DNA of 64,000 nt from NCBI RefSeq assembly GCF_006345805.1, contig NC_043005.1, positions 14,508,001 to 14,572,000 of the forward strand, in the 5' to 3' direction. Made by a program: the position numbers and the translations under genes. Under the pieces are notes generated by a model that saw only the letters and a program-made list of their open reading frames with translations, ran no database searches and was not told the DNA's origin. Numbering within the stretch: position 1 is the stretch's first letter; each line of letters begins with the position of its first letter. The DNA is from Octopus sinensis. Its lineage: Eukaryota. Below are positions 55,601-61,600 of this stretch, piece after piece.

Positions 55601-58600
55601 TTGAAGTGATACTAGTTCCGAACTTCATCGGTTCTGCATGGTGATGAATTTGATACGAGATGACCTGAATTCTTAGGCAACAGGCAGTCTAGCAAACTAG
55701 AAAACCTCACTCAAGTTTACACTTGCAGTGGAGACATATGACCAGTCCTGGTCGACGGGGACCCGATATCATAAAACTGATCACTAATGTAGAGAAAAAT
55801 ATTCTTTTTGTTTGTTTGTTTGTATTTGTTAACTTTTTAATTAACTGTGTATCAAATATTTCCCCTGATTATGTACAGAATAGGAGAACAACAGATGATT
55901 ATTGAATGTATCTCAGTTTACCTACTCTTGTTTCCTTAGATGATTAGGGTGGAGTAAATTCTTAGATATGCACCATAAGAAAAACTTACCTTGTTCTACG
56001 CTATTATTCAACAGTATTGGATTTCCACTCCAAGATTTAACTCGACCTTGCGAATCAAATTCAACTTTTAAGCGTCCTAGATATTTTCCGTAAGCGAATT
56101 CTTGGACGACCAGGACTTTTTCACCGCCCTTCTGTGTAATTACTTCCGGGTAGCTCCCTTCAGGTTTCTCAATTGATGGTGGATCGCCTAAACAAATGTA
56201 AAGAAAACATTAAAATCTACGTAGCTATCACGTCATGTTTTACTGTTGTTTTGGGGCCATTTGCCTATGCATACAGGTCTCCTTGTACCAACGAAATCGG
56301 GGAGACATTTGATCACAGACATTCCAACCATGACATAATGTGTCTTGGACAACATTTATCCAATAGGAAGTGTAGTAATTAAAACAAGCGCAATGGATAA
56401 AGTTACTCTGAAAAAAGTAAATAAACAGACGTTTTGGACATAAGCCTTTTATCAAAGAAGAGACGAGAATGTCCCGTGTTCCGGATTAATTTCACCTGCA
56501 GTATCTGAAACCCTCTCTTTCTTTTCCTCAGTAAAATGTTTGTCCCTCAAACATCAAGCTTTTATCATTCGCCACGATAGCTACGCTGATATTAACAACT
56601 GTACTTTTGCCTAGATTAATAGTTGCAAAATCAGGCCCTCGACACTTCTCTGATATTCGATTTTACATTTATCTAAGAGACCTGCTTTCTAAACAATATG
56701 ATGTGAATTGAAGGAGACATGGTTATTACTTCTAGCAAGTCGTTCGACCATATAAGGGTTCTCTCTCTAGTTTGAATTATTTTTGCAGTGATGTAAATTA
56801 ACAATTAATGTAAGATAATAATAACATAGACCAAATAAATTCATTAATTCTACTTAAGAGTTTATATCAAGTATTTCACTTTGAAATAGCTTCCCAGAAA
56901 GCTCAAATAGAGGAATAGGATGCATGTTAGTCGTACACGGACGGTTCCATGTCGAATGTACTTAAACTTCAACGACGAAATTGATATAGCTCTAGGTACA
57001 TACCACAGGGGATGTAAACTGATGTATTCAAAATTGTTTTGAGTGATTCCGTTGTAAGTGCCAGTTTCAATTGTTGTCACGAAATCTGCTACCACTCTAT
57101 ACGGAGTATGAAAGTTACACCCCTCATACGCTTAAAACCAAAGAAAATCAGATATGAGTGCCACTGTTAAAAATCACTGGAAATCTACTCTGATTATAAT
57201 TTTGGTTAAAAAGTTTTAAAGAGAACTTAAATCTGTTAAAACATGTCTCTTAGAGTCGGTCAATTTGATATAAAACCAAATATGTATAAGGAATGACATT
57301 GAACATTTTGGATATCTTTTACTTGGGCTTGATATCATGACACTCCCACATTCCTGATCCTGCGATCAATATTGGTTTTCGATAACTTGTGTTGTCTTGT
57401 CTCTGGGTCATGTTAGTAGAATTTGTATATCATTTACTCAGATTTTATAAGTCTGTAGAGTTAACTCAAATTAGTCATTTAATGATGTGTTTTTGGCAAT
57501 AAGTTTGAGTAAAAGAAAATCGTAAATCACTTTATTACAAATGATATGATCAAATGCGTACACTTTTCAAATAATTATTGGAATAAAAAAAACAACAACC
57601 TCTACACTCTGGAATCAGAGTGTCTTTCTTGAGAAATATGCATAATTCTTATTATATCGAAAATGCACGAGACAAAATTATATTAAAATTTGAACACTTC
57701 GGTTCACAAATCAGCTTTCTCTCTGAGAGTTGTATTATTTTACACCAATAATAACCCATGGTGGATTAAACGTTGAATGTTGATGCTAGTTAAATTGATC
57801 TCTCTTTCAAGCCGCGGTACCTATTTTTCGTAACGAGTCTGGTTGTGAGTGTGTGAATAGCGTATGCTCGAAGGTTTACCTTAGATTTGATTCTTATACT
57901 ATCATTCTGAAGTATTTCTGTTAAGGAATTAATGGAGTCAACGCTGGCACCATTGTGCAAATTAGAATAATTTAATTCTACCTGAAACTGTGTATAACTT
58001 GTTACTTGCTACTATTTTCCATTTAACTTTACTTCGGAGTATACTTTTCATAGTTAACTTTAAAAAATGTGCATTTCTTTAAAAACGCAGTCCCATAATT
58101 TTACTTTACACATTTACAATTATTATAGCCGGATGGACACACACACACACACACACACACACACACACACACACAATATATATATATATATATATCACGT
58201 GATCACGTGACCGACCAGGCTATCAGATGTTGCTACACATCGCTGGTCACAATGCGCTTCGCATTGTTTTAGCCTTCAAATGACGCCACCCCGCTGGCTA
58301 AGCGAGCAGGCCATATATACATACATATATATATATATATATATATATATATATATATATAGAATACTACATATATATATATATATATTATATATATATA
58401 TATATAATATATATATATATATATATATATATATATATATATATATATATATATTATAGATAAAATATTGTGAATTGAAGAAATGGAGCTGAACGAAGAT
58501 TGAACAGAAATCGTTTTATTTCATTCTACACGTGTTTCGAAAGGCACAATTTACCAAAATCCGATTGAATAATGAGACCATATTGTGTCTTTCTCTTCAG

Positions 58601-61600
58601 GAAGAAATAGGAAATCCGTTGGAAAAAACAAAAACAGAACAGAGGCGGAGCAAAACAAATCGAACTAGGCTCCTGTTTTCTGCTGTGATTTTTGCTACCA
58701 AGGTATCGGTTAAACTTTTGATTAATCTGCTACAAGATTATTCATCTTACTATTTCACATAATATATATATATATATATATATATATATATATATGTATG
58801 TATGTATGTATGTATGTATGGTTGTGTACATACGTACCTATATATACTCTTTTACTCTTTTACTTGTTTCTGTCATTTGACTGTGGCCATGCTGGAGCAC
58901 GTCTTTAGTCGAGCAAATCGACCCCAGGACTTATTCTATGTAAGCCTAGTACTTATTCTATTGCTAAGTTACGGGGACATAAACACACCAGCATCGGTTG
59001 TCAAGCGATGTTGCGGGGACAAACATGTATATATATATATATTCATATATATGACGGGCTTCTTTCAGTTTCCGTCTACCAAATCCACTCACACGAGGCT
59101 ATAGTAGAAGACACTAGCCCAAGGTGCCACGCAGTGGGACTGAACCCGGAACCATGCGGTTGGTAAGCAAGCTACATACCACACAGCCACTCCTGCGCCT
59201 ATGGGTCCAGTAGGGGTATATATATTATATATCATATGCATATGTGTGGGCGTGTGTGTTTGTATGCATATATATATATATATATATATGTGCCTGTGCG
59301 TGTCTGTGTATATATATGTGTGTGAATATATATATATGTGTGTGTATGTGTGTATACATACATACATACATTGCATATACTTATATTTCATATTGTCCAA
59401 AGAAAAATAGAAAGCGACTGCTCAAACTGATCAGTCTGATACGGATTGATTTGTGACAGTTAACGATTATGGGTTTGAAATGCAATAGATATTATGACGG
59501 GATGATAAGTGTTCGCACGTGGAAGGTTTGAGTGGCTGTTTCAGTAGGATAGGCTCAGAAACGACACGGCATTGGCTTGAGTTTGAGATTACAGTATGTT
59601 GAATTATGTGATCTATAACCCGTATATGTATAGCATATGCTTCGTCTCAGATATGCGACCAATACTCCAATTTAAGCAACAACTCTGACTGGTGTGTGTG
59701 TGCTTGTGTGTGTGTGTGTGTTGTGTGTGTGTGTGTGTGTGTGTGTGTGTGTGTGTGTGTGTGTGTGTGTGTGTGTGTGTGTGTGTGTTATGTGTGCGTT
59801 CTGAGTGTGTGAGTGTGAGGTCATTTGTGAGGTCGTTCATGGATGTTACTGGTGACATGGAATTGTGCAACCTGTTGTTTGGTCGAATCGTTGGAGTCTA
59901 AGCCGGGTACCCAACTATGCTATGTCAGGCGATGAGGGTTGCTAGAAACCCAGCAGGACTAAAAACAAGGCCTATCGAAAGGACGGATGAACCTAGTATA
60001 GGTTCAACGACTATCTAGGAATAGCGCGGGTCCTCAGAAATTCTGGTTTGGTGTCTGGCGTGCTGAATGACCACTGGCGGTGAGGCACCCCTTAACCTTT
60101 GATAAAACATGTCTCTTGGAGTCGGTCACTTTGATATAAAACCAAATATGTATAAGGAATGGCATTGAACATTTTGGATATCTTTTACTTGGGCTTGATA
60201 TCATGACACTCCCACATTCCTGATCCTGCGATCAATATTGGTTTTCGATAACTTGTGTTGTCTTGTCTCTGGGTCATGTTAGTAGAATGGAGAGGGTCTG
60301 TGAGGTGTTGTGCAAGCCTTACTGTACCCAAAATTTTGGTTTGTGCAATAGCCGGTGAGGAAACAAACTGATATTTGGTGGAATGTGGGTGGGGGGACAC
60401 CGCGGCGAGCATGGAAGCTGCGGGCGCGAACTCGAGGGAAGCCGACTGCTGGTGCAATAACCTCATGCACAGGCGTTGCTGGCATTTTGCATGGGAAATG
60501 GTCAGTGATGGTCCTCCTCGCTCACGGGTGAACAGCCACCATGTATTTGTGCATGTATGTATGTATGTATGTATGTATGTATGCATGTATGTATGTGTGC
60601 GAGTATGTATGTATGTATGTATGTATGTATGTATGTATGTATGGATGGATGGATGGATGTATGTATGCATACATATATGTAAATAATATATTTATGTACA
60701 CGCACACATATATACATGCATATATATTTGCATATACATACACACACATATATATATATAAATATACATATATATATGTATATAACATATTTATATACAT
60801 ACATATATAAGTATATATATGCATACACACACCCACTCTTACACACACACACGGGTACACATATTCATACGTACATACACACATAGACACATACCTCAGT
60901 AGATGTTTGAACACTTAATATTTTTCTGTTTATATCGTTTCTGAGATATCCTGCCCTTTTTATAGCCTCCCATTGGGAATATTGATATTTTCAATCGGTT
61001 GAAGTTATATACTCTCTCTTTTACTCTTTTACTTGTTTCAGTCATTTGACTGCGGCCATGCTGGAGCACCGCCTTTAGTCGAGCAAATCGACCCCGGGAC
61101 TTATTCTTTGTAAGCCCAGTACTTATTCTATCGGTCCCTTTTGCCGAACCGCTAAGTGACGGGGACATAAACACACCAGCATCGGTTGTCAAGCAATGCT
61201 AGGGGGACAAACACAGACACACAAACATATACACACACACTTATATATATATACATATATACGACAGGCTTCTTTCAGTTTCCGTCTACCAAATCCACTC
61301 ACAAGGCATTGGTCGGCCCGGGGCTATAGCAGAAGACACTTGCCCAAGATGCCACGCAGTGGGACTGAACCCGAACCATGTGGTTGGTTAGCAAGCTACT
61401 TACCACACAGCCACTCCTGCGCTTATATGGAGATTTTATTATTTTATTTTATTCCTTATTCAACAGAATTGAAACCGAATCGCTGACGCAACATACCGAG
61501 AGTTCGATACCTTCTTTACTGGCCACATGATGTAAATTGATCCCAATAGTGGTGATTGGGAGAATCGGTATTGAGCTGTATTAACCAAAGTGTGGTAACT

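Follow-up and report, generated by a model that had tools for sequence, protein, structure and literature searches.

Metazoan type-I hammerhead ribozymes are mostly solitary, truncated copies related to Penelope-like elements (PLEs); their helix III has 1 to 2 base pairs (bp) and a palindromic loop of 2 to 4 nucleotides (nt), and they act as dimers (PMC4209133). In invertebrate hammerheads, helix III is a 2-bp stem with a tetraloop (PMC7229834). This dimer-type design is known from satellite and retrozyme repeats and from PLEs, where it cleaves multimeric element transcripts (PMC4209133, PMC7229834). The hammerheads of PLEs lie near the 3′ end of the element, PLEs favor microsatellite targets such as (TA)n (PMC8557442), and most genomic PLE hammerheads are orphan copies (PMC4209133). 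Solitary retrozyme monomers are common in introns (~43% of Xenopus copies), though relatively depleted there (bioRxiv 10.64898/2026.07.22.740005). Here we analyze a 64,000-nt stretch of Octopus sinensis DNA (RefSeq assembly GCF_006345805.1, contig NC_043005.1, positions 14,508,001 to 14,572,000; hereafter, the window), in which an intron of a 5′-nucleotidase-like gene carries a hammerhead motif. An earlier note, made from the sequence alone, had read the motif as an intact, possibly exapted ribozyme that would cut nascent transcripts. We conclude that it is probably the hammerhead of a short non-autonomous retroelement, most likely a PLE- or retrozyme-type repeat or the 5′-truncated 3′ end of a PLE, and that it is presumably a passenger in the intron and not an exapted regulator.

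Read directly from the sequence, a complete type-I hammerhead consensus runs along the minus strand from 58609 to 58517 as UAUUUCUUC-CUGAAGA-[55-nt helix II]-GAA-ACACGUGU-A|GAAUGAAAUA. The invariant core is complete (C3 U4 G5 A6 N7 G8 A9, G12 A13 A14, the A15.1-U16.1 pair, and an H17 that is not G). Three helices surround it, with an open-ended helix I and a G10.1-C11.1 pair formed by G58593 and C58539. The A15.1-U16.1 pair (A58535-U58528) is supplied by ACACGUGU and is followed by a C-G pair that closes an ACGU loop; helix III is, in this way, 2 bp with a palindromic loop, and the whole segment is an 8-nt palindrome. Folding gives helix I nine Watson-Crick pairs and one bulged U (58523), located after 3 bp. 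From the core outward, helix II consists of a GAAAG/CUUUC base, an A.C mismatch after 5 bp, a CACAAU/AUUGUG stretch, and a distal hairpin, with 11 of the 12 basal positions paired. Loop 2 is absent at the canonical distance, and a loop 1-loop 2 contact is unrecognizable because helix II is 55 nt long (a 12-bp base plus the distal hairpin) instead of ~4 bp plus a loop. As a speculation, the bulged U of helix I and the A.C mismatch of helix II could replace the canonical tertiary contact.

Sequence comparison gives 100% identity between the window and O. sinensis CM016867.1 (GCA_006345805.1). The host gene encodes the O. sinensis 5′-nucleotidase-like protein XP_029640954.1 (domains Metallophos and 5_nucleotid_C) and lies on the minus strand. 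The donor of the intron (G62892/T62891) follows the codons for TFLYN(G), the acceptor AG is at 56189/56188, and the exon junction after TFLYNG is present in the annotated protein; therefore, the motif is on the sense strand. Several statements of the earlier note hold up well: the complete core, the sense orientation within this intron, and the predicted cleavage between 58527 and 58526, with which the register of the core agrees. The next acceptor, placed in that note ~2.3 kb downstream, is 2338 nt from the motif.

Coordinates of the hammerhead motif, the repeats that carry hammerhead cores, and the surrounding parts of the host gene (positions in the window)
Feature	Position	Strand	Basis or remark
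Type-I hammerhead motif	58517..58609	-	descriptor match, folding, Rfam alignment
Helix I strands	58609-58601 (UAUUUCUUC) and 58526-58517 (GAA-U-GAAAUA)	-	
CUGAAGA box (C3-A9)	58600-58594	-	
Helix II, 55 nt	58593-58539	-	
GAA (G12 A13 A14)	58538-58536	-	
Palindrome/helix III, ACACGUGU	58535-58528	-	
H17 = A	58527	-	predicted scissile bond between 58527 and 58526
Copy A, ~207-212-nt dispersed repeat, sense to host gene	58465..58676	-	alignment with copy B
Copy B, antisense to host gene, intron between exons at 37550 and 19660	31779..31985	+	alignment with copy A
Copy B hammerhead	CUGAAGA 31855-31861, H17 31927	+	
(TA)n microsatellite adjoining copy A 3′ end	58313..58462	.	Tandem Repeats Finder
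Family 2, unrelated ~185-nt repeat	32066-32250, 579-756, 51377-51578	-	three copies in window
5′-Nucleotidase-like exons	63061-62893, 56187-~55997, 50067-49936, 38285-38157, 37717-37550, 19660-19475	-	exon translations
Upstream exon	62893..63061	-	ends ...TFLYN(G)
Downstream exon	55997..56187	-	ends ...NNSVEQ
Host intron, 6705 nt, phase 1	56188..62892	-	splice sites and flanking exon translations

We designed a type-I descriptor, which matched the window at the motif itself and at one homologous copy (31855-31927, +). None of 300 dinucleotide-preserving shuffles matched it, at either the default or the observed stringency, while a much looser descriptor matched 13 of the 300. The Rfam scan of the whole window returned no match at the gathering threshold, and the scan of 501 nt returned none at E ≤ 10. 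When only 116 nt were searched, the family RF00163 (Hammerhead_1, clan CL00010) aligned over its full length (model positions 1-45) to 58521-58606(-), in the register originally called and with agreement at every core column. The fold of the motif is no more stable than that of shuffled sequences (z = −0.39), a result that supports neither side.

The homologous copy identifies the motif as part of a dispersed repeat, which we call family 1. Its copies were searched for with blastn in the window and in the extended O. sinensis locus (L001). Two were found within 89 kb, in opposite orientations and with ~98% substitution identity: copy A, which contains the motif, and copy B, whose core equals that of copy A base for base. 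The two differ by 4 substitutions in ~204 nt (~2%) and 3 single-T indels. None of these 7 differences falls in the core or the palindrome, which is no evidence of constraint because only ~0.8 would be expected in the core by chance. The differences fit the structure: an A-U pair of helix II becomes G.U, two changes strengthen the distal stem, and an extra U turns the bulge of helix I into a 1×1 mismatch. Copy B, like copy A, has (TA)n on its 3′ side; the tract beside copy A is either the insertion target or the tail of the element. The predicted cleavage site lies ~62 nt from the 3′ boundary of the element, next to this microsatellite, as in the PLEs described in PMC8557442.

The blastn searches of the window and L001 yielded no family-1 copies beyond these two, and the flanks of copy A and the upstream flank of copy B have no other match within the 83-kb locus. 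A peptide query from a spurious open reading frame (ORF) of the element had no match, and neither did family-1 pattern scans of metagenome and viral contigs; a 20-mer scan match in an unrelated GC-rich contig was dismissed as chance. On direct reading, no target-site duplications are evident at copy A or copy B. On its upstream side, copy A might reach 85 nt farther, as far as a (TA)n tract; in that case copy B would be 5′-truncated, as in an insertion of the PLE type or of the long interspersed element (LINE) type. The termini of the element are not definable because there are only two copies.

Conservation at the orthologous site had been set beforehand as a test of the earlier note's functional reading. 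The introns compared were L004 41100-44251 of O. bimaculoides and L002 17447-18463 of Argonauta hians, both orthologous to the host intron. The O. bimaculoides intron is 3152 nt long, has no Ns, and is collinear with the O. sinensis intron at 88 to 90% identity. The O. sinensis segment 59537-56695, which holds the element, corresponds there to an unrelated ~305-nt tRNA-like short interspersed element (SINE), after which the flanks resume at 93 to 94% identity. The family-1 repeat and any hammerhead are absent from this orthologous intron. In Argonauta hians the exon structure is kept, and the 1017-nt intron contains no CUGANGA box. This complete absence from both species indicates a recent, lineage-specific insertion. 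The two copies differ by ~2%, compared with ~10 to 12% between the intron flanks of the two octopus species, whose split is quoted as 13 to 33 million years ago in PMC13282606; together, these figures would imply that the insertion took place within roughly the last few million years. The intron alignments show that the element inserted beside (TA)n in the O. sinensis lineage after its split from O. bimaculoides.

Structure predictions suggest that the motif is built to work as a dimer. In the monomer, pair probabilities are at least 0.9 for helix II, 0.2 to 0.5 for helix I, and only 0.02 to 0.04 for helix III. The minimum-free-energy (MFE) homodimer is a double hammerhead (−44.7 versus 2 × −15.9 kcal/mol, ddG −12.9 kcal/mol), in which both cores are open, helices I are hybrid, and helix III is predicted to span 8 bp between the two molecules. 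These models agree with the suggestion of the earlier note that, with so short a stem III, activity may be confined to dimers. The combination of a 1- to 2-bp helix III, a palindromic loop of 2 to 4 nt, and a predicted double-hammerhead fold places the octopus motif among the dimer-type hammerheads of PMC4209133.

From the literature on such elements, we propose the following life cycle. Two copies in one multimeric or tandem transcript would pair via the palindrome ACACGUGU, this pairing would build the 8-bp intermolecular helix III and the hybrid helices I of a double hammerhead, and the double hammerhead would then cut the element RNA to unit length. Because the intron copy is solitary, and the sole other copy in the pre-mRNA is antisense and ~26.6 kb away, we expect it to cleave very slowly, if at all, and to leave 5′-nucleotidase expression largely or wholly unaffected. 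Slow intronic cleavage reportedly need not abolish splicing, as the exons stay tethered to RNA polymerase II.

Several other explanations of the motif can be weighed against this background. If the AT-rich DNA of the intron resembled the hammerhead consensus by coincidence, this would accommodate the Rfam score under threshold and the shuffle-like stability of the fold, but the shuffles and the second copy rule it out: copy B retains every core base, its indel and substitutions keep helices I and II, and the dimer MFE structure is a perfect double hammerhead. We give this explanation practically no weight. Much the same fate befalls the proposal that an active, exapted, cis-cleaving intronic ribozyme cuts the nascent 5′-nucleotidase pre-mRNA and tunes its output or splicing. 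The proposal drew on the presence of an entire core, in sense orientation, within a genuine intron and on the conserved intronic hammerheads of amniotes, in so far as PMC4209133 and PMC7229834 cite them. The octopus motif, however, is borne by a dispersed repeat of which the gene contains a further, antisense copy, its helix III is essentially unformed in the monomer, and the continuous 12-bp base of its helix II gives no recognizable loop 1-loop 2 tertiary contact. Above all, its absence from the orthologous intron of O. bimaculoides and Argonauta, as judged from the alignments, largely refutes exaptation, which we regard as very improbable, and the comparison with amniotes does not carry over. 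A weaker form of the idea deserves somewhat more credit, namely that the solitary copy is catalytically competent though not exapted and, alone or in trans, cuts a fraction of the pre-mRNAs with neutral or mildly deleterious effect. At physiological Mg2+, minimal hammerheads cleave slowly if they lack tertiary contacts, trans dimerization requires high RNA concentrations, and in the monomer helix III (P ~0.03) and helix I (0.2 to 0.5) are poorly formed. PLE minimal hammerhead ribozymes (min-HHRs) are inactive as monomers and weakly active as dimers (PMC4209133). Yet the core is intact, as a young, undecayed insertion would be, the trans dimer is thermodynamically favorable, and single-copy invertebrate type-I hammerheads with a 2-bp helix III self-cleave in vitro (0.1 to 0.8 per min in mussel and coral; PMC7229834). 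The monomer of the axolotl HHR_Amex2 is 22% cleaved in 1 h (PMC7229834). On balance, we consider such side-effect cleavage unlikely.

The origin of the repeat is a separate matter. Instead of deriving from a PLE, it could be a SINE transcribed by RNA polymerase III that carries a hammerhead, like Schistosoma Sm-alpha. It is short (~210 nt) and dispersed, has defined ends and a simple-repeat 3′ flank, and contains, on direct reading, a B-box-like string, AGTTCGATTTG, near its 5′ end; SINEs make up ~11.6% of the O. vulgaris genome (PMC13282606). What is missing is an A box or tRNA-like head, and Rfam gave no tRNA match in the window, where no dedicated tRNA search (ARAGORN) was made; in addition, two copies leave the termini undefined, and the possible 85-nt extension of copy A would make copy B a 5′-truncated copy. 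We therefore think a SINE origin rather unlikely; as to superfamily, the element may be a PLE fragment, a non-autonomous derivative, or a SINE. The assignment to a hammerhead-bearing PLE- or retrozyme-type element, which we prefer, also has to contend with a series of observations that weigh against it. The RF00163 score is 14.8 bits versus a gathering score of 34 (E = 0.44 for the 116 nt searched), a low value due to a 51-nt insertion in helix II (~10 nt in the model) and a weak match in helix I. Helix II is, at 55 nt, far longer than in the described PLE and retrozyme hammerheads. There is no evidence of purifying selection on the core and, with two copies, no covariation statistic. No ORF for a reverse transcriptase or GIY-YIG endonuclease and no pair of pseudo-long terminal repeats (pLTRs) is linked to copy A or copy B. 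Monomer inactivity is a model prediction only; invertebrate hammerheads with a 2-bp helix III do cleave singly in vitro (PMC7229834). No tandem arrays of the element occur at either copy, both being solitary, and the entire element folds no more stably than shuffled sequences do (z = +0.15 and +0.32). Retrozymes are defined by tandem repeats of ~170 to 400 bp with one type-I hammerhead each and by a rod-like unit RNA that accumulates as circRNA (Cervera & de la Pena 2020); unlike them, the octopus copies are not tandem and their ~210-nt unit is not a highly self-paired rod, so that they depart from this definition on two counts. Retrozyme descent is still conceivable because solitary retrozyme monomers exist (bioRxiv 10.64898/2026.07.22.740005).

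Other hammerhead-like sequences lie in the same window. The three copies of family 2 have the core CUGACGA-A-GAGCuccGCUC-GAA-ACGU-H, which is the PLE min-HHR architecture (PMC4209133): an unpaired nucleotide after A9, a G10.1-C11.1 pair, and a bare ACGU palindrome with no loop 3. Family 2 fits the PLE min-HHR consensus better than family 1 does. Its copies are 84 to 88% identical, the core block being the best conserved, and all three adjoin TA-rich tracts. Position 17 is U in the copy at 32198 and G in the copy at 706, and CUGA is changed to CCGA in the copy at 515xx. The predicted dimer of family 2 is not a clean double hammerhead. Within 31779-32250, a single (TA)n tract (31986-32065) separates copy B (+) from a family-2 copy (-), and the 3′ ends of both point at the tract. 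The two elements seem to have inserted independently into one microsatellite, as would fit a preference for (TA)n targets.

A further hammerhead-like motif is located at 4365-4436(-). It has a CUGAUGA box, a 54-nt helix II (GCGUAAGG.../...CCUAGCGC), GAAAC, and an outer helix I of GGCU/AGCC, shares the string AAUCGGAUU with the helix II of family 1, and is flanked by microsatellites (fold z = −1.89). Rfam matches no hammerhead to it, and a helix III that is clean or palindromic is missing; the motif may be either a degenerate relative or a product of chance. Elsewhere in the same gene, and unlinked to the family-1 copies, there is a remnant of a GIY-YIG endonuclease-like ORF at 41322-41714(-) (L001 47688-48080), whose match to PF01541 (E = 0.005) does not reach the Pfam cutoff. 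Low-complexity, CA-rich sequence comes after it, and the remnant is probably a PLE that has decayed and lost its 5′ part. Together with family 2, it gives the PLE-type reading of family 1 some support from the local context. The large intron between the exons at 37550 and 19660 also contains a mariner-type transposase remnant (Pfam Transposase_1, E = 1e−22) at 20897-21418(+), which corresponds to L001 67984-68505(-).

The host intron itself is rich in repeats: at least 31% of its sequence recurs at other places in the locus, and SINE copies lie at 62242-61819, 61442-61008, and 59203-58762. The same intron measures 1.0 kb (1017 nt) in Argonauta, 3.15 kb in O. bimaculoides, and 6.7 kb in O. sinensis, an increase due to lineage-specific insertions of SINEs, microsatellites, and repeats. 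The N-terminus of XP_029640954.1 (489 amino acids [aa]), MAKVDGATFSVDL, matches the C-terminus of a retrotransposon-like ORF that lies immediately upstream of the gene (L001 9554-10042), and the O. vulgaris and O. bimaculoides orthologues have 595 to 596 aa; the O. sinensis gene model is probably 5′-truncated or mis-started in a repeat. Octopus is known for heavy A-to-I RNA editing. The sense and antisense family-1 copies could pair within one pre-mRNA into a near-perfect double-stranded RNA of ~200 bp, a typical ADAR substrate.

These results indicate that hammerhead-bearing families of retroelements exist in octopus genomes, at least two of them in this one gene, and that Rfam thresholds miss them because of the long helix II or the min-HHR architecture. 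Our literature search returned four papers in which both hammerhead ribozymes and octopus are named, none being a study of octopus hammerheads, and family 1 may therefore be undescribed. It is an improbable idea that family 1 represents an undescribed, recently active cephalopod lineage of hammerhead retroelements with an unusually long (55-nt) helix II, whose intact sense intronic copies remain active enough to cut host pre-mRNAs, alone or by pairing in trans with abundant transcripts of the family; if so, young insertions would be a source of species-specific expression variation. Were the solitary copy active, a transposon would here have brought a self-cleaving ribozyme, in sense orientation, into the pre-mRNA of its host. 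For now, the motif is of value mainly as annotation: as far as its sequence can tell, it is an ordinary transposon relic of a young mobile repeat and not a conserved gene regulator. More generally, exaptation should not be read from a perfect catalytic core in an intron before repeat membership and the orthologous sites are examined.

Among known systems, the intronic HH9 and HH10 of amniotes (RF02275 and RF02277; De la Pena & Garcia-Robles 2010, in PMC7229834) share with the octopus motif the location on the sense strand of an intron. As presented in that source, they are single-copy, ultraconserved at orthologous positions, and stable as monomers, whereas the octopus motif is repeat-borne, lineage specific, and predicted to depend on dimerization; it shows neither orthologous conservation nor a unique sequence with a stable monomer. 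The satellite and SINE-like repeats and the non-LTR (long terminal repeat) retrozymes (newt satellite 2, Schistosoma Sm-alpha, and those of coral, mussel, and axolotl; PMC7229834) are much closer. They have the same type-I topology, full core, and G10.1-C11.1 pair, the same 2-bp helix III with a palindromic tetraloop, and the same folding into double-hammerhead dimers, and are alike in being low in GC, repeat-borne, and scattered as solitary monomers, including in introns. Their helix II, however, consists of ~4 bp and a loop, in contrast to the 55 nt of the octopus motif. The hammerheads of PLE pLTRs (Cervera & de la Pena 2014, PMC4209133) differ from it in having an unpaired nucleotide between A9 and G10.1 and in lacking loop 3. 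They share with it the palindromic 15.x-16.x segment and a longer-than-usual helix II, as well as the location near the 3′ end of the element (~60 nt from it), the (TA)n neighbor, the mostly solitary copies, and a predicted dependence on dimers.

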